The notes under the pieces were generated by a model. It worked only from the letters and a program-made list of their open reading frames with translations, had not been told where the DNA came from and ran no database searches. Shown here in pieces: positions 17,654 to 62,496 of a stretch of 64,000 bases of DNA. The stretch's first letter is position 1. The number at the start of each line of letters is the position of its first letter. Both the position numbers and the translations under genes were made by a program. Location: NCBI GenBank assembly GCA_047495785.1, contig JBLDXI010000014.1, positions 558,001-622,000 of the forward strand, written 5' to 3'. The stretch comes from Lepidodermella squamata. Taxonomy: Eukaryota > Animalia > Gastrotricha.

Positions 17654-19042
17654 TTAGCTTAGCAGCTTTTTTGCCGCAGAGGGTAACAGATTGACCCGCG
17701 CAAAATTAAGAAGTTCTGGCGCTATATTGTTCGCGGACAAATATTCGACTAGATCAAAGTGTTGGAATGAGCACAGGTATTGGGTTGAAGTCTTCTGCGT
17801 CGCAGCGACGCGACCCGTCCAGCCGGAACCAGCTCCGCTGTCAACGCTGTTTCTTTGAATCAAACCAGCGTCGATCAAGCGTTCGAATGCCCTTAGCGCA
17901 GTGGCTTTCGAGCAAAAAAATCGAGCCTCGTGGTGGCGACGTACAAACTGCTCATATACAGCATAGGCAGCTTCTAATAGCACCGGTTGGTGGTTGGAAG
18001 TCACAGCAACGTGGAAACTGACTAATAGAGCCAGTTCAAGAGGAGAAAGGGCAAGTAGAGCCGTGTGACCAGGAGGGTTATAAAACAGTTCAATTTGAGT
18101 CGACAAGCGAGCAGGATTAAGACAGTCATCAAAAGTTCCAATGCCGGCTTGAAAAATCAGCCGGCCTAATATCATTTTTAGATCCCGAACACTGGGGTTT
18201 CGTTCGAGCCAAGCTTGAATAACAGCTTTTGTTTCGTTTGACTCAATGAACTGCGAAACAGTGTTGTTCCAACGTTGCGTAATATCTTTCTGAGAAGCAT
18301 TGTTGCTTTTCGTAACACCGACCGTCAAAAATAGCTTCATCAAATTTTTCATAGTTTCAACACTGTGGCAAGGTGGGATGAGCAACTGCTCACCCGAAAA
18401 CCGGGATCTAACTCGTTTCTCCAATAACTCCAATACTCCAAATCGATTTGATAGAGCCAACACGCAGATCGGAAGTTTATCAGCATTGTGAACTGAATCG
18501 ACCAAAGTGTACAAAAGACCTTGGCTTCGCCTGGCAGCAAAAATTTCGAGTGGATCCAAGACAAATATCAAGGCAAAAGGTCTAGTTTGAGTTGTCAGAA
18601 GGGACATCACTCTACCAAAACGATCGCCAAGCAAGACTTCCTCAGATTCTTCAGCAAGTATTTTGATTGAAGTGCCAGTTTGCTCCTCTATTTGAGCGGC
18701 AATGTCGTCGATTGCCGATTCGTCAGTCGAATGCACAGAAGTCAATCGTATAACGACGATATGACGGTCATTCTTAGCTTTCGTCACATTTGATCTAACC
18801 CGGTTCAATGCAGCTTCGACAAGAGCTGTTTTGCCACTTCCAGCCAATCCACATACCAAGACGGCGTCTGACTGCTTGTTTTGAACTGATCGTGAGATTA
18901 ACGAAACAAGTTGTTCGAGTTCACTGGGAACGATTTCGGTGACCAACCGTTCGGTAAATGATGGATCGCTGCTTTCAGACAATAATCTGGCGCTCAATTC
19001 GGCGCGCATAAAGGGCGCTTCCGACAATGAGTAAGACTTCAT
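17654..19042 (-). CDS. ORC4: Origin recognition complex subunit 4 (intronless CDS)
   Basis: Walker A GLAGSGKT, QGLLYTLVD, arginine-finger motif LEKRVRSRFS, and a C-terminal region LSPLELALL...AFERL. Confidence 0.9.
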   Translation of the reverse strand: MKSYSLSEAPFMRAELSARLLSESSDPSFTERLVTEIVPSELEQLVSLISRSVQNKQSDAVLVCGLAGSGKTALVEAALNRVRSNVTKAKNDRHIVVIRLTSVHSTDESAIDDIAAQIEEQTGTSIKILAEESEEVLLGDRFGRVMSLLTTQTRPFALIFVLDPLEIFAARRSQGLLYTLVDSVHNADKLPICVLALSNRFGVLELLEKRVRSRFSGEQLLIPPCHSVETMKNLMKLFLTVGVTKSNNASQKDITQRWNNTVSQFIESNETKAVIQAWLERNPSVRDLKMILGRLIFQAGIGTFDDCLNPARLSTQIELFYNPPGHTALLALSPLELALLVSFHVAVTSNHQPVLLEAAYAVYEQFVRRHHEARFFCSKATALRAFERLIDAGLIQRNSVDSGAGSGWTGRVAATQKTSTQYLCSFQHFDLVEYLSANNIAPELLNFARVNLLPSAAKKLLS

Positions 19043-24619: not shown

Positions 24620-27440
24620 ATGAAGAATAAAGTGACAGTGTGGTGCCGTATAAGACCCAGCGCGCAATTCGCTAACACCGCCATCCATATTTTGAAGGAG
24701 GATAAAACCATAAACATTCATTATCCGCGAGATGAGAAGCAAGGAGTTGTGAACAATCAATGTCTGGACTGGTCGTTTCGCCTAGATGGAATTCTTCACA
24801 ATGCATCGCAAGATGACGTCTACAATTGTTGCGTTGACCGCATCGTCAACGAAGCTTTAAATGGATTCAGTGGCACGGTTATGTGTTACGGGCAGACCGG
24901 GGCTGGAAAGACTTTTACGATGACTGGTACGACGGAGAACTTTCATCACCGAGGAGTTATACCGCGGGCGATCGCAGGTTAGATTTGCTGAAATATTGTT
25001 GGTTGATTTTGCATACAATCTATGTTATTAGGACTGTTCCGTGCCATTAGAGACCGACAAGATCTCTCAGTTAGCATTAAGATATCATATTTTGAAGTTT
25101 ACAATGAAGCTATAAACGATTTGTTGTCTTCGCTTCCTGAGGCAGCTACAGTAAATTCTAATTCGGAGCCTGCGGTTGTGGTTGAGGATGAAAATGGAGC
25201 TTACGTCCGCGGATTATCTTATCATCTTGTGCAAAACGAAGAAGATGCCGTTAGTTTACTGTTTGAGGGCGAGGCTTCTCGGGTCATTGCAGCTCACTCC
25301 TTGAATCGTCAATCGAGCCGATCACATGCCGTTTTCACTGTTTACCTCGAATGCAGATCTCGTATCGCTACAGGTTTACCAATTCAACACTGCTCATGAT
25401 TTTTTAGTAAGCTATTATTTTAGATGCAAGATATACTACTGCCAAGTTGAATTTTGTCGACTTGGCGGGGTCAGAAAGGTTGGCCAAGACCATGTCAGCC
25501 GGAAAAGCTCGCGAAGAGGCGATGTACATTAACAAGTCACTATCGTTCTTAGAGCAAGTAGTCGTCGCTCTGGCAGAAAAGCGCCGAGAACATGTTCCGT
25601 TCCGTCAATCAAAATTAACTCACTTTCTCAAGGTAAATTTGTTTTGTTTTTGTTGTCAGTTCGGCAATTTTATGTTTTGATACAGGACTCTATAGGTGGT
25701 AAATGCAATACTGTCCTTATTGCAAACGTTCGCGCGGAACTTGCTCATATGGAGGAAACTGTTTCAACTCTTCGATTTGCCGTTCGTATGATGAACGTCA
25801 CTGCAGAGCCAGCAGCGCTTGAACACGTCGATCCGACCGCAATGGTTCGTCAACTTCAGGGCGAAGTCGGTGCTCTTCGCAGGGAATTAGCGATGAAAGA
25901 CGCTCTCTCGAATCGCCAACCCGAGCGTTATGAGCCTCTGACTGACCAGCAACGTCGTGAGTTGGAGCGTTCGGTTCGTAAATACATCGAAGGTGGTGCA
26001 GATTCTTTGGAGATCATCAGCGCTCGGCAGGTTGAAACCGTGTTTGAAATCTTCAGGAAAGTTTTCAAGGAACTTGAAAGGGACACCGAAAAAAGACTCC
26101 GAGAAGCTCAACAACAAGGCGTTAGGAAGGGTCAACCAGGAGGGGTTGTTTCTGGCCAGCCATCTGATTTGTCAGATGACATGGGCAATGCTGGTGAACT
26201 AGACCGGCGAGGTGGTTTCGGCATTTCTGGAGCCCCGGCGGGCAGCAAAGCCGAGCCGAATGCTGTGGCTAATGCAAAGAAAAAAGAAGCAGCAGCCGCA
26301 GCCCTGAAGCGCCGATCAACTTTGATTTCACAAAGCCCTGCGCCAGAGCAGCCTGAACACCCGCAAGCTCCTCCAAGTCCTCAGATGCAACCACAAGGTA
26401 CGGCCAGCAGTAACAAGAAAGGGTCTACCGGGGCTCAACGAGACCCGTCTTCGGGCCACGCGCCTCCTGTTCAGCAAGGAAGCACAGTAGCTGATACGGT
26501 ACATCCACCAAATAGATCAGAGGCTTTCGAGGAATTTAAAAGAGGCCGCGGCCAAGAAATTCAACGCGTACTCACAGAGAACAAAGAAGTTCTCATGCGT
26601 AAGAAACGCGCTTATGCCGAAGTTGCTCGACGAGTTAACTCTCTGAAGTCTGAAATCGACAAAACTCGAGGAAAACTTGATCAGTTGAAAGCCGAACGAG
26701 AGGCGGAGGGTTTCGCAGTACCGGTTGGTGAAAACGGCGAGAAAGAGGAGGTTGTCATCACGGAAGATGAATTCGTCGAGATTCGGAAACTGCACGATTT
26801 GAAACAGAAATATCGCCTCGCATATGATGAATTGTCTAACATCCGCTCAAAAATAACTTATTGCCAACGATTGATCGATCAATGCCGGCAAAGGTTACTC
26901 CGCGAATTCCAGCAATGGTACGCTGAGTCTTATGGCGTAAACCTCGGACTGATTTCATCTGCAGATGGCTTGGACAAGGACGATAGACAGGCAAATTAAA
27001 CCCAAAAGCTTTTATTTGAAAAATTAATTCAAATTTATTTCTAGATTGGAATCGATACTGGTCTGAGCGGCGAAAGTTTTGTGGTCGATGAAGACGAGGG
27101 CGATCGATTCGAAAGAAAACAGCGCGAGCTGATTGAAGACCCTGAGCAGTACTCATTCGCTAAGGCTCGAAATCGTGCCGATCATCGGATAGCGCAGCAG
27201 TCGCCTAATTCGTTCAGTGTTTACAACAGCTACCGCAAAAACGCGCCACAAGTCTTTAATGTTGTTGGCGTAGCCGGCGGTCTCGATCACCCTAATCATC
27301 CCTACATGATCGGTGCGGTCCAACCGGGGCCCAGCCCGCTACCTGTTGGCATGCTATCTCCTCATCAACAGGCTATTACTGGGCCGGTGACCAAGCCGAC
27401 CAAAGGTGGCCGGCTTCCGCCCATGCCCGTCGGTGGCTAA
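24620..27440 (+). CDS. KIF9: Kinesin-9 family motor KIF9 (5 exons)
   Basis: GVVNNQCLDWSFRLDGILHNASQ, GQTGAGKT, SSRSH, FVDLAGSER and HVPFRQSKLT, followed by a coiled-coil tail. Confidence 0.9.
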
Positions 27441-34730: not shown

Positions 34731-36617
34731 TTACATCTTGACGAACGTAGCAGCAGTGGCAACACCACAGTTATTATCCTTCGGCGACATAAGAACTGCG
34801 AATAAAATACGGTAAACAAAATATTCAGACCATCTAAAGTATAACTTACCGTAACCGTCGTTGCCCCAGTAAGTAGACCAGGAATTCTGTTCGAAATAAA
34901 TTACGAACTGTTTAATCAGGCATTTAAAGGTCAAACCTTCACGAGCCAATATTCAGACCCATCCATTAGTTTGCCATAACCGACGGCCAAAACAGCGTGA
35001 TCAAGACCGCTTTCACTGTTGCTGCAAGCCGGTTCATAGTAAACACCATTGGCGTAAAAGGAGAACGACTTGTGAGAAGCGTCGATAGCGACTGAGATGG
35101 GGCCGTTGGTGGCGATAGCTTTCTTCAGAGCTTGAATGTCGCCAGATGGCACGCTGACGTATCCAGTGATATTGGCGACGCCAGAAACGTTTTGAACCTT
35201 GCACATGCCATCTTGAGCAATATAGGGACCATATTGCTCCTCGGAGGTGAGACCGTGCTTCTTGATGAATTCGTAAGCATTGAAATCTTCTCCACCATCG
35301 CAAGCATTATTGCCCTCGCCCCAAGAACAGTCGACAAGCTCTTGCTGAGAGAGACGAACGAGATGACCGGTTTTAAGGAAGTAAGCGCCTTCGACGGTTC
35401 CGGTTGTTCCAAATGACCAGCAAGAACCACATACTGCTTGATCTTTAACTGGAGTAACAGCACCGTACAAACGCCAGTCAATGTTGTCAGGAACGGCTTG
35501 AGTACCGAGGAGGTTGTGCAGCACGGGGTCGAACGACTCTGGCTTGGCAACTTTGGAAGAGCGGCGGAAGCCTCGCATGACCTTCAGCTCGTCACTAGTG
35601 CGGTCAGCCAAATGGTTGATAGCAACTCGATACGATTTTCCGGCACGATTGACTGAATGAACGTATCGGACGTTTTGCATGAAAATGCTGTTACGTAAAA
35701 GTAAACAGTCGAAGTCATCAAAATAAGCAAAATAAAAATTCATCACAATTTACCTTTTGCGGACGGCATGCTCTTTGACTGAATCGTATTCCTTGCCATG
35801 CATGCGTTGGTAATTTTCGAACAGCTCATCGTGGTGATCGCGGTAATTGTGGATATATTCAGCCAGAGGATTCATCAAGACTGAATGCTCGGCCGTGCGC
35901 TGTGATCCGGGGTTCCAATTTGAGCATTTGACATCAGCTGGGGGATCGAAGACTTCTTGATTTGGGGTGGTGGGAGAGAAATACTTGTACTCAATGACGT
36001 ACTAAACCATAAATCATAACTCATACTTGAAAAAATGATTCTTCGACTTATACCTTGTCAAAGTGGCTTCCAAACAGTGAGTCGTAGCCAATCATTTCGT
36101 ATCGGTAAGGCTGTCCGGTGACTGGGTCGACAGTGTATGTGTAAGTGTTCTTCTTGGAACCAACTTCCTCAACAAATTGCCACTGATCAGCAGAGTGACC
36201 ATTGTACTGAGTCGTTCCAACGTAGGCAAACCCGTCAAGCTCTGGAATGCCACCTTGAATGCTGGTAGAGCCATCTACTTGAAAGCATGACAACTGATTC
36301 AATACAGTTTCAGTAGAAGTATATGCTATCTTGTATGAAGATCCAGAGTCGCCACGCTGGATTGTCTTTACCAAGCCATCGTAATAATCAATACGACTGC
36401 GTTTGCCTTCAGGGTCGAAGTAAACGGTGAACTGCTCTTTAATCTCGGCATAGGGCAGCTCAAGATAGCCCGATAAAATATAGGCAGAGTACGTTGGAGG
36501 CTTCTTTACTTGCACATTAGGTTTTGCTTCTTCGAACAATTTACGACTCCAGAGAGGGAGAGGATCCCAAGCAGCGACAGCACTGATAAGAACGAGCAGC
36601 AATAGAAAAATCTTCAT
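34731..36617 (-). CDS. Papain-family cysteine protease, 26/29-kDa proteinase / CfaD-like
   Basis: Signal peptide and a long N-terminal domain (RYEMIGYDSLFGSHFDK), I29-like prodomain, and catalytic motifs QAVCGSCWSF, LDHAV and NSWS. Confidence 0.9.
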
Positions 36618-45611: not shown

Positions 45612-46496
45612 GCTGACAGAGCAGAAACGGGGTTTTTCTATTAAATGACCCTAAAGTAGAAAAATAGTTCAAAATCATAAACGGTTCCATTTTGATTGGA
45701 AAAATTCTTCAACAAGACGACAAACTGTTGGTATTTTGTTGGTACAAAGCTCAACGTCATTATTTCAAAGAAAGTCCGAGAAAATTAATTCATCATTTTT
45801 AAATATCCCATTTGTTGTAGCGATATCGGTGAAAAAAACAGCGCGTTGTCATCATACTCTCTTCATAACATCATCAAGGCCACACCACGTGTCTGAATAC
45901 ACATATATAAATACGTCTAGAAGCATCTTTGTAAAAAGAACAATGCAGCGAGAAGACTCGAGAAGTGATTGTACCAAATGATAACAATAATAATTAATAA
46001 TTTGACAACATCTACATTTTTCGAGCAAAGAATTACACGAACTGCGAGAAGAAAAGCCCAAAGTTATCGTCGCTCTTCCGTAAAACACGAATTAAATTAT
46101 AATTACATATAGGCCAACTTCATATAATTTTGACATCGTATCACGCTTCTGAGTCTTCTAACAAGTAGCCAACAAGTACAACAATAAAACGCTGATCTGG
46201 GCCCAAAATCAAACTGAAGGCATTAAAATTGAAAGGTTTTCTTAGATTACATAGAGCAAAGCCTCGTAACGGGTGCAACGGTGGAAGCTCTCAATAGCAA
46301 CAACTATGGCGAACTATAACAACTAACCAAGCTGTAACTAAAATAACTCGAATTCGGTAATCTCAAAAACGAGGGAAGGCGCGAGCATCTTTTTCAAGTC
46401 ACTTGATTTTACTCCATACTCATTTTTACGATATGTGGCAAAGCTCAACTCGCAGGCAGACAGGATTAACATAAGGCGAAGCTACAAATTTTACTC

Positions 46497-48319
46497 TCAT
46501 GTTTGAACAGTTGCGTCTGTCGATGATGAGTCGTCAAAGCCGCCATTATTTGACATATCGGGCCGCTCAATTTGAGGCGAGGTGACATCTATGGAATTTG
46601 CCGAGGGCGATCTTTCGCGCTGTTGTGGATTGAAATATTGCAGTTGCTGTTGAGGCGGCTGGCGTACAGTCGACGTTTTCGGAAGTTGGTTTCCATTAGG
46701 TGACGAAGACATCATCACAAATGAAGGCGAGGGAGGTGTCGCGATAGACACAGGTGGGTTATTTACGGCGTTTTCAACGGGGGCCAGGGCCATTGTGCCG
46801 AGAGGTGTGCCGCCTGTCGCATTACTGACTTGCGGCTGTTGAATCATAGCGGGGATTTGGTGATCGGTTAACAATAAACTCTGTAAAACATCGTCGGGAA
46901 CGTTGGCTCGAAGCAGCTCGTTCTCACGCTGAACGACATCGAGCCGATTTTGAAGGTCGACAACCACGCCTTGCATAGCTTCCAGTTCGTGCCTTACGGC
47001 GGCCATGAGATACTTTTTAACAAGATCCAATGCTTGTGATACTTTTGTTTCAATAGCAGCCAGGTCGCTGCCTGGGGTCGGGTGGGCGGCACTGAAAAAG
47101 CCGGCGGAAGAAGGGGCGCCGCCTACCGAGGATGAAGCGGCACTAGTCGATTGCACCATGACAGGCGCTGTCACGCCCTGAGTTTGGCCGAAAGCTGAGA
47201 AGCCGCTGGTCGCGGCGGGGTAACCGGAGGGGTCGGTGGAGAGAGCGCGGGACAGAGCCGCCGCGGTCCGTTCCACCATTTGTTGGGTCGAAAAATTATT
47301 CTGTTGAGGCTGCTGAGGCGGCTGCGGGTACCTCTGTGCCTGCATTTGAGGTTGAAGAGCACCGTTCGTCTTAGCCTGGTTCTGCTGCTCCAATATCACT
47401 GGAAGATGACTGTTCGACGATGGCGGCGCCATTTGCACAGGCCCCGCGTTCAACTGATTAGTCATGCTGGGCGCAACCACACCGGAGGCGGGCGAGGGAT
47501 TCGGAGGGGGAGGGGAAGTGTCTCGATGGTCGTGGTAGTCGCTACACGCCCATCGACCTCTCCTAAACTCGGCTTCGACTTTTAGAATTGTCTGTAAAAA
47601 GAAAATTAAATTAACCAACAGTTTTGCGTCGCTTATAGTAAAATTACGATTTCTCGACCAGTTTCGGTCTTTATAGTTGATACTGATGGGGCGGGTACAA
47701 CCGGTACATTGGAAGGAACAACCGCACTAGCCGGAGCGACTGGTACGGTCGAAGTCGAGGGAGGGGGCTGAGCCTGGGTAGTTACGATCGTAGAGATGAT
47801 GTTCGGGGCCTGAGAGTTATCAACCGCGTTTACAGCGGAAATAGGAGGGAATTCAACGATGACTTCTTGTGGCGATGATATATGCATGGCATTGTTCTGT
47901 TGACTCATTTGATCGAGATTCGCTTGTTCTATCGAGTAGCCTTGGACAGCTTCCGACTCCGACTCGGTAGCCGGGCCCTCCTCGCCAGAAACTCCATTGC
48001 CATTAAGCTGAAAGTCCTGCTCCTGGTCGGTATCATTTGCCGTTCCTGTCAAACTGAGACTGCTGTGGTGCAGATTTCCGTTGCCAGGCGATGAAGCAGC
48101 GTCAGTTTGTAGTTCAACTGCGATTATTTCAAAAGCAGACGAGGCCATCTTGCCGGGGATTTGAACGCGGGTGGACGAAGAGACGTTCATTGAGTCTGAA
48201 CTGGAGCCGGGTTCCACCTCGGCCTCCGAGTTCACTTCGTCCTCGAGCGGCGACTGGGGCGTTCCCAGCAACATTCCTGATTTCGAGCCATTGGTGCTGC
48301 CCGCACTGGAAGATGCCAT
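46497..48319 (-). CDS. TSC22D: TSC22 domain family / bunched, long isoform (2 exons)
   Basis: Long-isoform motifs SAFEIIAV and FRRGRWACSDY, plus TSC box and leucine zipper AIETKVSQALDLVKKYLMAAVRHE...ENELLR. Confidence 0.85.
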
Positions 48320-49175
48320 ATAACATTCAGTTATAACATACTAAATGCGACGAGAAACGAATTTTAGAAAATTTATCAGCACGATGCCACGCATCATTAT
48401 TATTTACGAATTATTGGTTTGCTTTCTCGAAAACGGTCAAAGCGCTTGGAAAACAACAGATATTGCTACAACTACGTAATCCTAAAATGTAGAAAGTGGT
48501 GCAGACACTGTGCGGCTTCCAGATAAAGCTGAAAGAAACGCTCTCCATAAAAAATGATACATTATTTAAAATTAGATAAGGGTTAGAACGCAGCGGTTGA
48601 TTATCAATTAAGTCAAGATTTAAAAACAAAAGTTCACAAAAAATCGGGCAAATAGTTATCAGCAATAACAATCGATAATTAATAGAATGATAATAAATAT
48701 TGACATCGGTCGAGCTTACCGGTCGCACGAAATTGATAGAATAATTTCAACAACGTAAGAACAAACACAGCAGTGATGAAAAATGTTCCATTCTTGAAAA
48801 ATAGCGATACGAAATTTCAATAAAAACGGCGAGCAAAATTGTTCACCTGCGTTTTAACCCAGCACCAACCGTCATATGCGCGTCGCGACACGTCGGTTCA
48901 AAACAATACATATGTATTCATATAATATAAATTATGATAACAGTGTATGACCATAAAATAGGACAAAGCAGTTGCAACATTTTAGCCTCCGTTCACGCCG
49001 ACACGGTAACATTGGTACATAATTCTCATCTCCTTTTGCTCTATCGTAATTTCAAGCTACGAGTCAAATATATTCCACAGAATGAACAGCAACAAATAAT
49101 TTTCGAGCAGCAAATATGTGCGTCATACCGATGACCGATAAATTGAACAGAGAGCTTTACAAAAGAGTACGATCT

Positions 49176-50509
49176 CTACATCCAGCCCGCAGAAGCGCTC
49201 CCATTTTCAAGATGATTCGATGACATTATCGCACCGCTTTGTTCGAGCTATTCACAGAAAAATATGTTTTACAAATAACATTGCATTAAATACGACTCAC
49301 TTGTAAAGATGGAATCAAATCTTCTGGTGTCGATGGAATAACATTGCCACTCGGATAGTATCCATTTGTGGAGTTTACGCCACCAGAAACTGTGAGAGCC
49401 GACATTACTTCTTCCAATTTTTGCTCCAGATCTTTGATCTTGGCCTGCATGCGATCTCGCTCGTCTTTCAAGCGAGCAGCTATAACCATTAACTGGCGCC
49501 GTTCTTCATCCGGAATTGGCGCGGTAGCAACCTGCTGAGGTGGCTGCTGATAGACGACATTTGCATCGCCCACTGTCATATTTGGTGGGGGCATAGTCGT
49601 AGCAGGCCAGGAATCTGCGTTATTCGCAGTTGACCACCCATTGTTGGGCTGATAGCTCTGCGATGTTACTGGCAAGGAGCGAGGAGCTGGAGTAGCAAAG
49701 ACTGAGGAGTCAGGTACGACAACACTTTCCGAGGGTCCTTGCTGCCACTGGTCCTGAAGGTTAGATTGTGGCCATTGATGGCTTAGGCCAGCTGATGAGT
49801 TAGTAACTGAGATGTTTGGGGGAGGGTATTGAATTGGAGATGGTTGCTGTTGTTGCTGTTGCTGGTGAGGCCACCAGTCGGTGGCGGGCTTGGATTGCTG
49901 CTGCTTCAACGTGGCAGTGGGATATCGATGGCTGCCAGGGGCCATACGCGGATTAGCATACGGCAATGACGCTTGCCTGCCATGCTGAATATGTGCTCCA
50001 TAAGCCAACGACGTTTGTGAACCACTGGGCTGTTGGTAGAATTGGGATCGTTGTTCATACGGAGTATAGTTAGTTTGCATATTGTAAGGATCCGCCGAAG
50101 AAACCGGCAATGAATGCATTTCTTTCAGACCATCAGAGGTAACATATTCAGGTTGCTGAACAGAACTTGGTAATGTAGAAGTTCCCCATAAGTTCGCATT
50201 TGGCTGGCCTCTACTGAAAACTGATCGCGAAGGAGCGAAATTTATTGCGGGAGTAGATCGCGAATACGCATGAGATATTCCGGAGAAAGAAGCATTGGCG
50301 GGGCTTTGAGAATCAATATGATCTGGAGGCGGTTGAAAAAACGACGGTGGTAGTTTGCGATCTTTCCATGGAACTCTCGGATATCCTGAATCATCTCTAA
50401 TCGACTTTTGAGATCCATTGCTACAATTAGCAAACAAATCGTTGAATAGCTTGTCGCTATTTTCCCTAACGTGCTCGATTCGCCGAGGCGATCGAGCCAA
50501 TTCCGTCAT
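49176..50509 (-). CDS. YAP: YAP/Yorkie homologue lacking WW domains (2 exons)
   Basis: TEAD-binding HVRENSDKLFNDLF...RKLPPSFFQPP; LATS-type site HGRQAS; coiled coil; DLIPSLQ; intron 49248-49300; C-terminus AGWM*. Confidence 0.8.
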
Positions 50510-50987
50510 GGCAGCGATAACGATACGACAATTTAAACTGCCTAAAATAAGGAAAATTGTGGAATGTAATGCCTTTAATTTACTTCCCGCGTTATTTACA
50601 AGTCAATGACATCAACGAGAAAATAATTGCAGCTATCACTTATTAATATTCGCATGCTACATGCTCCACGCCACGGCTCTACAAACAATAATGATTACCG
50701 CCAGCTATTACTGCCATTCATCGAGCAAATTTTCAAATTCCACAAACCAAGTACCATGAATAATAATAAGTTATCCTGGGACATACATTACATGTCTCTG
50801 AGTTAACCATTAACAACTTCAGTCAAAGTTCAAATGAAGATATTATATAAGCATCATAAGAACAGAGATGTGCTGGTCTTTGGCATACAGGCCACCAAGG
50901 GATAGATATTATGAAGCAGCATAAAAACAAAAAGTGCTTTAACATGGAATACATTATTACTCGGCCGTAAGTTCTTCATTATCCTGT

Positions 50988-51258
<271 letters not shown>

Positions 51259-52227
51259 TCAAGAGGAATAGGTGGAATCTAACAATACATGCACAAAAGT
51301 TAGATGACAAGCAAATAAAAGTAGTAAGGTGAGAGCATTGAGCATCATTCAAGCAGACTAGTTTGAGACTATTTCAAGCATCAAGCATCAAACGTGAAGA
51401 GATGTCAACATTTCAAAGTACTAGGAGACTACGATCTATGAGCATCAGCGTAAATGCATCGAGGTGACAGCAAACGAAAAAATCATTACGGTGAGAACAA
51501 AGATCTGGCCTTTCTTCTCTATAGCATATATCAAGAGTCAAGAGGGAATCGAAATTAATTTTATCATACGCGGGATGGGAGATAAACTTGCAGCTTGCGA
51601 CTTGCTAACTAATGAATTCAAGAAAAATATTGATAGCACAAGTTTAATAGTTTGAGCTCAACAATGTAGCTCTTGCGTTCGAAAGATTGGGTTGAGTCGA
51701 GAAACCGAGCTGAAAGGCATTTGACAAGCCATTTGTACTTCAACTGCATTTAATTTTTAAAATTAATGCAATTAATCAATACGCATGTTCAGAGCAATAA
51801 TAAACAATTATTTTCGAGATAATAAATGAAAATAGTAATGCTATGCTAAAAAGGTGTTGGCTCAAATTCTCCAGACCGTCGCCGCAGTTTTTTGCATTAA
51901 AAAATAAAATCGAAATAAAATGATCAATTTCTAATGAAAAATAAACGTTATTAATAAAAAGATGTAAATTTTCAAAATTGCAAGGTCATTTGGTTTTGCC
52001 GGCTGGCGATCTCTACGGAGACGTTTAGGATTCAGCGGCCGATCTGGCGTTGAGTTGCTGACCTGTTCGAGACACTCATTGACCAGCAGTTTAGCAACTT
52101 TGAAGTGAGGAGACGCGTTTTTCTCCGCAACATTAGTTTTACAATTAGAGTACACAGCCTGACGAACGGCTCGCAGGCAAAGTTTTCAATGACTTATGTT
52201 TTTTAGGGTTTCGTGATGTTAATAAAC

Positions 52228-53867
52228 ATGAATGCTCCATACTGTTGCCATCGAAGTTGTCAAGTTCGTGGAAAAGGATTGCACAGAGTCAAACTTCCAA
52301 AGAATGAAAGCGAAGCTGCTGAATGGTTGAAATATCTTAAGTGTGTTGCTATGATTTTTGAGTGACCGTGATTCATTTTTGTTTAGAATTACAGGCGTTA
52401 CTCCAGAGAAGGCTCGGAAAAGGGGCTATCGCGCATGTGATGTACACTACCGAGGGCTCATGGATCTTTCCGGGGAAAAATCATTATCGCCACCGCATAA
52501 ATTTAGGTATGTCTTAGATAGTGGAATTAATCGGTCCCTATTTGAATACATTTTTATATAAATTTAGAGTTCTACCTCCGGATCATTCTTATACTGTTCC
52601 CACCATTGCGACTGAGCACGCCTACTTCGTTTCATCCATGGCAACTGGAATGACTCAGGAGGAAGCAACCGCATACCCTTGCGATCTTTTTGCAGCAATG
52701 GACTTGAATGCTGCTCATGATTCGGGGGAAACGCAACAAACGCACGAATTGAGTGAAGTTGTTTCTGAACCAATCGATGTTGATAACGTGGCAGCAACGG
52801 TGGTCCCTCTGGAGGAAGTTACGCAAGGTCAACTACAAAAAGAGGTCAGCCTTATTGCTGGTGCTTCTTCGACAATTTATGTAGGATATAAGCCAACTCC
52901 TGTTAATCCTGATTTGCCGCGATGGTCGTTTGCTCAACAGTGTTTCGAACGAGGAGAAAAGCATTTTCTTGAAGAAATAGGAATCGTAGATTTGCAAACT
53001 TTTGATGCGCTACATGGTCTGCTTGATGATGTTAAAGATTATTTCCCATATAAATGTTCAATTCTTCCGATTCGTGATCAATTATATCTCACTCTAGCTA
53101 AACTGAGGTTCAATCATAGAAATCACACTTTGGCTAACATGTTTGATATTTCTGAAACCGTTGCTGCGGATGTTTTTAATAGCACTATTTTGGTTCTTGA
53201 CGACCTGCTAAGCCACGCCTTCTTATTACCTCCTCCGTTGGAGCAATCGACAAATCCAAGTTTTGTGCCCAATTCCTTCAAACCTTCTCTAGAAATGACA
53301 ACTTTTATAATCGATTGTACTGATTTCTTTTGCGACGAGCCCAGAAAAGATCTAAACTTGAAACAACCAATGTATAGCGCTTATCGTGGTGGCACTACGC
53401 TCAAACTACTAGTTTCAATCGCTCCTTGTGGTACTATTAATTTTGTGTCACCTTTATTTCCGGGCAGTACTAGTGATAAGAAAGTTGTCATTCACGGCGG
53501 TCTTTTGAAGCATCTTAAAGATCCCGGTCATTTTATTTTAGCCGATAAGGGTTTCTTGATTGAGGATATCTTGCCCCGACATGTCGGATGTAACATACCT
53601 CCCTTTGCTTTTTTACCTCAATTTACTTTAGATGAAATAGAACATACCAGGCAGGTTGCGCGGAACCGCGTGCATATAGAGAGAGCGATCGGGCGAATGA
53701 AATTTTATGAAATATTACAGTATTTTCATTTGAATACTTGGCCTTATGCAACAGCGATTGTCCGCGTCGTGGCATCACTTGTGAACTTGGAAAGACCGAT
53801 TATAAATGAGATGAGTGATGCCTTCATGTCATTGTCAACAGCCCGTATTGTAGTCACGATGAAATAA
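52228..53867 (+). CDS. Transposase: THAP zinc finger + HTH + DDE_Tnp_4 (3 exons)
   Basis: THAP CCHRSC...P...W...CDVHY; DQLYLTLAKLRFN HTH region; catalytic IIDCTD, GSTSD, LADKGF and RVHIERAIGRMK. Confidence 0.9.
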
Positions 53868-60430: not shown

Positions 60431-62496
60431 CTAGTGTGTTTTCCGGACGTCGATTACGTAGACGGTGCCGTCGGCAGTGGAGGCTCCGACAAGAGTGCCG
60501 CGCGAGTTCCAACAGACCTCAAAAACGCCAGCGGAGCCGCGGAAGCGCCGCGCGGGCGACATTTGCCCAACTCCAGTAGGCACGGAGATCACCGGATTGG
60601 GTTGCCGTACGTCCCAGATGTAGACGAACTTGTCGAAGGCGCCCGAGGCAAGCAGAGTACCGTCCGGAGAGAAGGCCACGCTATAAACCGGTTCAGTGTG
60701 CTGCAAGCGGAAATTTCAGCGTAAAACAGGCATATCACAATGATAGCAAATAACAAACCTTGTCTAGTACTCGGGTACAGTAGCCTCGATCGACATCCCA
60801 AAGGCGCACTGTTGAGTCGAAGGAGGCAGAGGCGAGGCAGAGGGGGAGGTTAGGGTTGGGAGAACCCGGGCCGGTCGGGCTCCATTTTATTGTGTAAATT
60901 TCCCTAGGAAAAGCATTCGTGTAAACACATTCAATATACAACCAAAGTTTACTCACTTATCATGTCCTTTGAGGTCATGAAGGTATGTGTCACTTCGCAT
61001 GGACCAAATCTAAAAATATCAAATAACCGTAACATATATGCCCGATTGCAAATGGTTGAAACTGACCTTGAGCGTCATGTCATCGCTGCAAGAAGCCAGG
61101 AGAGTAGCTTCCGGACTCCATTTAATGGCGTTCACTTCGTTGGTATGGCCACGTAGAGTGCGAATCGGAGCAGTCTGGCCGATTTCACACACGTATATGA
61201 GTTTATCGGTGGAGCAACTCGCGAAAGTTTTCTCCGACTGCCAGTCGACGTCGAGCGCCGGCGCTGTATGCAACGGAAACTGTTGGATTATCCGCCCGTT
61301 CGACGCGTCCCACACCGCCGTTGTCTTGTCGACGCCCGCTGACAACAGGTACCGGCTGGTGCGGTTCCACTTGAGCGCGAATATGGGACCGCGGTGCTGA
61401 GTCAGCAGGGTAAGAAGCCGGCCGTCGACCGACCACACACGGGCACAGCCGTCGTACGACCCGGTCGCGAGCCGCTTGCCGTCGCGGCTCCAGTCGAGAC
61501 TCGTCACGTCCTTGTTCGGCTTGCCACCGCCGTTCGCCGTGGGCGCAGAGGGTGACGAAGAGCCGTCGTGCGATGGCGACGACGCGTTATTGCCACTAGC
61601 CGCGCCGGTGTTGCGCAACACGACGTGGTTTAGTGTCGGACTGGTGAGGTCCCAAATGCGAGCGGTGCTGTCGCCACTTCCCGAGGCGAGAAGATCTGTC
61701 TGAGGATTCCATGCACAAATAAACACCTCCGACTCGTGGCCGCGCAGCACGAAGACGCCGGACGAGTCTGTTTTGCCCGACGGGTCGATTTCGACCATGC
61801 AGGGGAGAGGAGCGACTTGTGGCGCCTGGTCACCGGAGACATCCGGATGGTGCCGCGAGCCGTGGTTTGACTCGGAAACGTCCATCCTGTTGCCATCTGG
61901 TGGCGCTGATTGCACGGCGTTCGTTGAATCGACCGCCGCGCCAGGAGCAGAAGAGGTTGAAAGACATGATGCATGTTGCGTACCATTGCCGGTATTCTGT
62001 TGCTGTTGTTGCTGAGATTGGGTATTTACAGGCATGGGCGGTACCGGTAGCTGGGGCCGCAAAGTTTGGCGCTTTGCTTCGACGATTTCCGGCGTCACAG
62101 CATCGATTATACTCAGAGGAGGCACGATGGGGGTGTAAGGAGTTTGCTGATCTGCCGACAGCGCTGCGCCGTTCGACAATTCCGCCTTAAAAACATCCAT
62201 TTTATATTTACACGCTTCAACTCAAATCAAATTACTTCTGCATGAATTTCTGCTTCGACATACTGCACACCGCGTTGTATTAGCGATAACAGTGCTCCCG
62301 ACGGCACCTGACTCCATACGATATTGGAATGCGCGATATTTGATTCGGTTCCAAAAGAAAATGCGGAATGAGTGAACCCTTGTAAACAAATTTTTTCAGT
62401 CATTAAAACTCCAACAATTTTCATTTCGTCTCTTTTACCCGATTCAAGAAGATACCGCCATATTAAATAATTGATTTCATCTGTACTGAAGCTCAT
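60431..62496 (-). CDS. TBL1XR1: TBL1X/TBL1XR1/ebi LisH + WD40 co-repressor subunit
   Basis: [26 protein letters not shown] (LisH), [24 protein letters not shown] and [11 protein letters not shown]. Confidence 0.93.

Follow-up and report, generated by a model that had tools for sequence, protein, structure and literature searches.

The YAP-like gene on the minus strand of the 64-kb stretch of DNA analysed here (the window) quite probably encodes a transcriptional co-factor that derives from YAP/Yorkie, having lost the WW domain(s) and retained the remainder of the YAP layout. As judged from its sequence, the product is a real, expressed YAP-derived partner of TEAD (binding is predicted) that is WW-less and conserved in its lineage, and it constitutes a new form of YAP/Yorkie.

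The transcript was defined by comparing contigs of public runs with positions 46300-52000 of the window; two of the runs, X2 and X3, behave as transcriptomes. Their contigs omit exactly 49248-49300, together with the short introns of both neighbouring genes, and match the genome collinearly everywhere else between 50543 and 48419, which bears out the two-exon splicing put forward in the original prediction. The encoded protein comprises 426 residues, with the ATG at 50509 and the TAG stop at 49178-49176. Because the RNA contigs are collinear with the genome, no hidden exon is present between the TEAD-binding domain and the coiled coil, as had also been anticipated from the single uninterrupted open reading frame. 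The 5'UTR extends from 50541 to 50510, the acceptor context is ttattttag/gcag, and an AATAA-rich stretch at ∼48400-48420 lies near the 3' end of the mRNA.

Loose contig ends at 50543 (YAP-like gene) and at 51280 (the upstream RAMP4 gene) carry identical non-genomic letters, which occur nowhere in the 64-kb window. Both mRNAs are therefore trans-spliced to a leader at a ttttag acceptor. The N-terminus of the YAP-like protein is accordingly complete. Read from the two loose ends, the spliced leader is ...GGGAACCATCTGCGAATTTGATTTGTGTCTA(AG); the published leader of the ctenophore Hormiphora differs from it, and literature searches on the leader brought up nothing relevant. The positions of all features are collected in Table 1.

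Table 1. Positions of the YAP-like gene, its protein features and its two neighbours in the window, listed in the direction of transcription.
Feature	Position	Strand	Basis or remark
Upstream neighbour, RAMP4/SERP gene, two exons, intron 51029-51080	50593..51280	-	Same spliced leader as the YAP-like gene
Trans-splice acceptor	50541..50543	-	AG at 50543-50542; first transcribed genomic base after the leader near 50541
YAP-like gene, coding exon 1 (residues 1-403)	49301..50509	-	Open frame; collinear RNA contigs
TEAD-binding domain, residues 13-61	50327..50473	-	Pfam, PDB search, hhalign, AlphaFold2
S/P/Q-rich disordered interval, residues 62-330	49520..50326	-	Occupies the position of the WW domains in canonical YAP
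HAYSRSTP, residues 80-87	50249..50272	-	Positional equivalent of YAP Ser127 by alignments; kept in three species
HGRQASLP, residues 176-183	49961..49984	-	Complete HxRxxS LATS/Warts consensus with Pro at +2 (RxxSxP, 14-3-3 mode I)
Predicted long helix/coiled coil, residues 334-372	49394..49510	-	AlphaFold2, pLDDT 80-95
LIPSLQ, residues 398-403	49301..49318	-	E[DE]L[IV]PS[LI] in three species
YAP-like gene, GT..AG intron, 53 nt, phase 0	49248..49300	-	Joint 49247->49301 in X2 and X3 contigs
YAP-like gene, coding exon 2 (residues 404-426 and TAG stop)	49176..49247	-	Protein end ...SAGWM
C-terminal G-W-M	49179..49187	-	Relatives P-W-M and S-W-I; canonical YAP T-W-L
YAP-like gene, 3'UTR, ∼757 nt	48419..49175	-	One X2 contig reaches 48419
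Downstream neighbour, TSC22-domain gene, intron 47592-47647	46497..48323	-	Start ∼95 nt past the 3' end of the YAP-like mRNA

Relatives of the protein were sought by several routes. A word-index search with the whole sequence returned a single relative, P0001 (391 aa); the same search with residues 1-100 at E<=10 was blank and missed even P0001, and this result is not evidence. An exhaustive HMMER profile search of 1.84 billion representative proteins (E<=1e-3) yielded three matches: P0001, P0002 (379 aa, from an mRNA-like metatranscriptome contig) and P0003, a 128-aa first-exon fragment of canonical YAP, which is the only match from outside the family and comes from an unrelated run. Identity to the window protein is 49% for P0001 and 39% for P0002, and both relatives have the same layout and are WW-less. 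Conserved in all three species are the omega loop, HAYS[RK]S[TV]P, HI[QS]H[GA][RK]Q[ANH]SLPY, short tryptophan motifs, the coiled coil, E[DE]L[IV]PS and an x-W-[MI] end. A further sequence, P0004, is nearly identical to P0001 (two substitutions), a distance at which dN/dS is uninformative, and runs X1-X4 contain too few variants for an assessment of selection. An ESM-Atlas feature search gave only low scores (<=0.81) to unrelated low-complexity clusters, which were rejected. The mRNA-like contig of P0002 begins with a leader similar to that of the window gene (L003:1-40; GGGATCACTTGCTGAATTTG...TTAATTTGAG). It ends in AATTTGAG, a motif described for ctenophore leaders (PMC8527503), and differs in the remainder.

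By sequence comparison, the N-terminus of the YAP-like protein is YAP-derived and contains a YAP-type TEAD-binding domain, in agreement with what had been predicted. The domain consists of HVRENS, a helix with F22-x-x-L25-F26, a linker and the omega loop V46-P-W-K-D-R-K-L-P-P-S-F-F-Q-P-P61. The omega loop (residues 46-61) was recognized by the Pfam family TEADIR3 with an E-value of 2.4e-6 and 28 bits against a cut-off of 26. TEADIR3 was the sole Pfam family above its cut-off, and Vg_Tdu, the TONDU motif of Vestigial/VGLL, gave no match at E<=10. When residues 1-103 were compared by phmmer with all PDB chains, all eight matches were YAP (one filed as 'Yorkie homolog') and none was TAZ, FAM181 or VGLL. 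The best of them, 3kys_B (E 0.007), aligned over residues 10-88 and paired HVRENS with HVRGDS, followed by the helix, the omega loop and the flank of Ser127. Similarly, hhalign of the three-species alignment against the canonical invertebrate YAP fragment P0003 gave a probability of 94.8 and an E-value of 5e-8 over residues 11-93, a match that extends past the omega loop into the Ser127 flank.

The TEAD-contacting residues are all preserved. Residues P47, W48, R51, L53, P54, S56, F57 and F58 correspond to human P85, M86, R89, L91, P92, S94, F95 and F96, all of which are identical except M86, which is replaced by Trp; the same residue is found at this position in TAZ and beetle YAP (PMC7784741). 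The positions of human L65, L68 and F69 are occupied by F, L and F (residue roles from PMC7784741), so that the helix motif of the family reads FxxLF or FxxMF compared with the canonical LxxLF. FxxLF is a conservative change, and the Met at the L68 position of P0001 is likewise seen in some YAPs (PMC7784741).

Canonical YAP was represented by L004, a contig of the Logan assembly of SRR10189786, which holds an invertebrate YAP in pieces: its first exon ends inside WW1 at ...ERYFMK, and a later open reading frame encodes WW2, the coiled coil, HMREES and then DSGLG, and the end FLTWL. A piece of this sequence (L004:1018-1722) served as the positive control of the Pfam scan and yielded a WW domain at an E-value of 1.3e-10. 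In the same scan, neither the window protein nor P0001 nor P0002 gave a WW domain at E<=10. The tryptophan spacing W-x(18-24)-W is absent from the YAP-like protein, and W-x(19-23)-W-x2-P is absent from every frame of the 64-kb window. AlphaFold2, supplied with the three-sequence alignment, placed no strand across residues 66-325, where pLDDT is below 50; apart from a confident helix at residues 334-372, it predicted only a helix at residues 12-30 and, with moderate confidence, an omega-loop region. The interval from residue 62 to 330 has the Q/P/S-rich character ascribed to it in the original prediction, with 39 Ser, 35 Pro and 35 Gln among its 269 residues, and carries short conserved tryptophan motifs (NLWG, D[WF]W, PNLW and NSW). 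Collectively, these data demonstrate that the YAP-like protein is truly WW-less, as had been claimed, and that this condition is conserved in the lineage and is no artefact of annotation or assembly.

Within the interval, residues ∼212-232 (49870-49940) form a block of the type W-(S-N-x-P-S)-H-x-[VI]-[DN]-[QH]..[FY]-x(1-2)-P that follows K-P-A-x-D-[WF]-W. We considered this block as a collapsed relic of WW1, which it resembles by eye in the three-species alignment (P-P-G-W...L-N-H...W-x-x-P) at about half the length. We mention this candidate as a remark only; neither Pfam nor AlphaFold2 lends it support.

The consensus of LATS/NDR kinases is HxR/KxxS/T, and the mode I site of 14-3-3 is RxxpSxP. 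Three sites of the YAP-like protein bear on this type of control. The first, HVRENS at residues 13-18, is equivalent to Ser61; it fits HxRxxS and is present in the window species only, being absent in P0001 and P0002. The second, HAYSRSTP, aligns onto HVRAHSSP of human YAP and HSRAHSSP of invertebrate YAP. In all three species this Ser127-equivalent site reads HAYS[RK]S[TV]P, with Tyr in place of the Arg at -3, and is off the kinase consensus; the loss of Arg noted in the original prediction is thus confirmed by alignment. The third, HGRQASLP, also fits HxRxxS, as predicted for it and for HVRENS, and is conserved in all three species as H[GA][RK]Q[ANH]SLP. Its position matches the HxRxxS site found directly before WW1 in canonical YAPs, which we take to be human Ser164. 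The motif suggests that control by a kinase and 14-3-3 may be retained through HGRQASLP. Since this HxR/KxxSxP site is complete and conserved in all three species, the further proposal that the protein escapes 14-3-3 control is unsupported.

The C-terminal half was examined for the remaining YAP features. Hydrophobic residues are spaced every 3-4 positions in the helix at residues 334-372, a segment that is conserved in the three species. LIPSLQ is presumably comparable to human LMPSLQ; a match of this type is not shown by a canonical invertebrate YAP. Of the PDZ-binding tail of canonical YAP (T-W-L), the three ends keep the Trp at -1 and a hydrophobic last residue, and Ser/Thr at -2 occurs in one species only (S-W-I). 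Homology of the C-terminal half was not detectable by hhalign of the three-species alignment against the canonical C-terminal half (L004:1018-1722; probability 0.65), and homology is therefore proven for residues ∼11-93 only. The TEAD-binding domain, coiled coil, LIPSLQ and xWM do follow one another in YAP order, as had been noted from the sequence, and the C-terminal likeness to YAP appears to be one of motif order only.

The YAP-like gene lies between the RAMP4 gene, whose 3' end is ∼50 nt from the YAP-like acceptor, and the TSC22-domain gene. The order RAMP4 > YAP-like > TSC22 (46300-51280, minus strand) is an operon-like run, in which the shared leader was seen on the first two genes, and the same order is found in the metagenomic organism of P0001 (L001, L002, L005 and L006). 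It is curious that a growth-related gene of the TSC22/bunched type stands immediately downstream of a YAP-like gene. The cluster is adjoined by a transposase open reading frame of 448 aa at 52521-53867 on the plus strand, which contains DDE_Tnp_4 (E 2e-31) and HTH_Tnp_4 and is of the Harbinger/PIF type. Elsewhere in the window there are long intron-poor open reading frames for ORC4 (17654-19042), a KIF9-type kinesin tail (25644-26999), a cathepsin-L-type protease (34931-35746) and a WD40 protein (61019-62200); Rfam gave no match in the 64 kb, and the taxa that the Atlas lists for ORC4 were uninformative. The intron-poor frames and the introns of 52-56 nt seen in RNA indicate a compact, gene-dense genome, and KIF9 in the window together with NPHP4 at the locus of the relative indicates a ciliated animal.

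Two readings of the gene are close competitors. In the first, it is an extra, lineage-specific paralogue, and a canonical YAP with a TEAD-binding domain and WW domains elsewhere in the genome carries the standard Hippo output. The WW-less copy would then be a specialised TEAD partner, or a competing and dominant-negative-like one, freed from PPxY control. We give this reading a nearly even chance. Domain loss is generally commoner after duplication, which favours it. The canonical first-exon open reading frames that we found all break at the same point inside WW1, and the intron position is thus widely conserved; the WW-less gene has no intron there, which is compatible with a derived or retro-copied gene. 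At ∼50269, moreover, the final part of an X2 transcript contig is inverted and codes for VPWKDRKLPP, differing at two synonymous positions, and this end may be an assembly hairpin using an allele or a hint of a second gene copy. Against an added paralogue, the searches linked no canonical YAP to the lineage. The one canonical fragment recovered comes from an unrelated run, and of the ENA-sourced hits checked from a search seeded with P0003, none came from the samples holding the relative, an absence that weighs lightly in these partial data. In addition, nearly all YAP hallmarks other than the WW domain are kept across three species whose identity is only 39-49%.

On balance, we lean slightly towards the gene being the YAP orthologue of its lineage rather than an added copy. 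In its fullest form, the orthologue reading holds that this is the sole YAP/Yorkie of the lineage (probably gastrotrichs), that all WW domains were shed, and that the following HxRxxS site took over the 14-3-3 switch from the Ser127-type site. We put this forward tentatively, at somewhat less than an even chance.

The remaining alternatives fare much worse. An unrelated disordered protein could have gained an omega-loop motif, as in FAM181A/B, and acquired the YAP motif order by chance. It is true that the sole Pfam match is a 16-residue omega loop common to YAP, TAZ and FAM181, and that the C-terminal half lacks significant similarity to YAP. FAM181A/B also share with the window protein the omega-loop TEAD-binding motif (Pfam TEADIR3) and the lack of WW domains. 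However, the loop of the window protein sits in a YAP context, with HVRxxS, a helix 20 residues upstream and a flank of the Ser127 type, and the similarity to YAP spans residues 11-93 compared with the 16-residue loop of the FAM181 type. These ∼80 residues, which include HVR-x-x-S, the helix, the omega loop and the I-S-H-x-x-x-S-x-P-A flank of Ser127, were matched at an E-value of 5e-8. Moreover, all PDB matches are YAP, and the HxRxxS site, the coiled coil and the xW-hydrophobic C-terminus succeed one another in YAP order, so that we regard a non-YAP origin as improbable. Least probable of all is a decaying or non-functional copy whose WW loss is degeneration: the long low-complexity middle and the missing Arg of the Ser127-type site would suit it, but the reading frame of 426 codons is unbroken, and two independent transcriptome-like runs contain the mRNA in spliced, leader-capped form. 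Three species at 39-49% identity share the layout and the short motifs, one relative also shares the gene order, and the pseudogene and annotation-artefact readings were rejected on this RNA and conservation evidence.

A mechanism can be proposed for a YAP-derived co-factor of this kind. The N-terminal helix (F22-x-x-L25-F26) and the omega loop would bind TEAD/Scalloped in the fashion of YAP. A Warts/LATS-type kinase would phosphorylate Ser181 in HGRQASLP, and phospho-Ser181 with its Pro at +2 would form a 14-3-3 site of mode I by which the protein is retained in the cytoplasm. Because the Ser127 equivalent is off the kinase consensus, the regulatory role has probably shifted to the next HxRxxS site, the presumed equivalent of human Ser164. 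The coiled coil and the E[DE]L[IV]PS and xW[MI] tail may provide dimerisation, transactivation and localisation. Without a WW domain, the PPxY inhibitors Warts/LATS, Expanded, AMOT and PTPN14 would be unable to dock, as would co-activators of the Wbp2 or NcoA6 type, and control as well as output would have to run free of WW-PPxY contacts.

Compared with YAP, TAZ and Yorkie, the window protein shares the TEAD-binding helix and omega loop with all contact residues, the coiled coil, the x-W-hydrophobic end and the HxRxxS-type sites in matching order, at Ser61-, Ser127- and Ser164-type positions. It differs in the loss of the Ser127-type Arg and in having no WW domain, whereas the known members have one or two; single-WW forms occur in sponges, Trichoplax and TAZ (PMC4761220). 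We found no report in the literature of an animal YAP without any WW domain. The main survey of YAP required a TEAD-binding domain plus at least one WW domain for inclusion (PMC7784741), and WW-less forms were therefore filtered out by design. Sequences like the TEAD-binding domain have been described in WW-less proteins of the choanoflagellates Salpingoeca rosetta and Monosiga brevicollis (Mesrouze et al. 2020, PMC7784741). These proteins are non-metazoan and described by sequence similarity only, whereas the window protein adds phosphosite flanks of the bilaterian YAP type, and its lack of WW domains is best read as a secondary loss within animals. The reverse case is provided by YAP-1 of C. 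elegans, also from a fast-evolving invertebrate lineage that dropped one YAP module, in which the WW domain is kept and the canonical TEAD-binding domain is missing (PMC7784741). MleYki-like, described in 2016, has two Nedd4-like WW domains, in contrast to the window protein, which has none. It indicates that the architecture of TEAD-binding domain plus WW can come apart or be rearranged in certain animal lineages, and that WW-keyed searches can miss partners bearing a TEAD-binding domain (PMC4761220).

The WW domain is treated as defining for YAP/TAZ/Yorkie, from the unicellular relatives of animals to humans. A natural, expressed and lineage-conserved form without it sets the TEAD arm of YAP function apart from its WW/PPxY arm. 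Because this form recurs in no fewer than two related species, it offers a natural experiment on the functions open to YAP in the absence of WW docking modules, and its conservation shows which short motifs selection retains in the disordered middle. If the protein is the sole YAP of its lineage, the output of the Hippo pathway has been rewired, and Warts docking, sequestration by Expanded/AMOT and WW-dependent recruitment of co-activators would be dispensable for a working YAP-TEAD axis of an animal. As a paralogue, the protein would represent a novel kind of TEAD partner derived from YAP. In both cases, the finding suggests that WW-keyed homology searches under-report the co-factors of TEAD.
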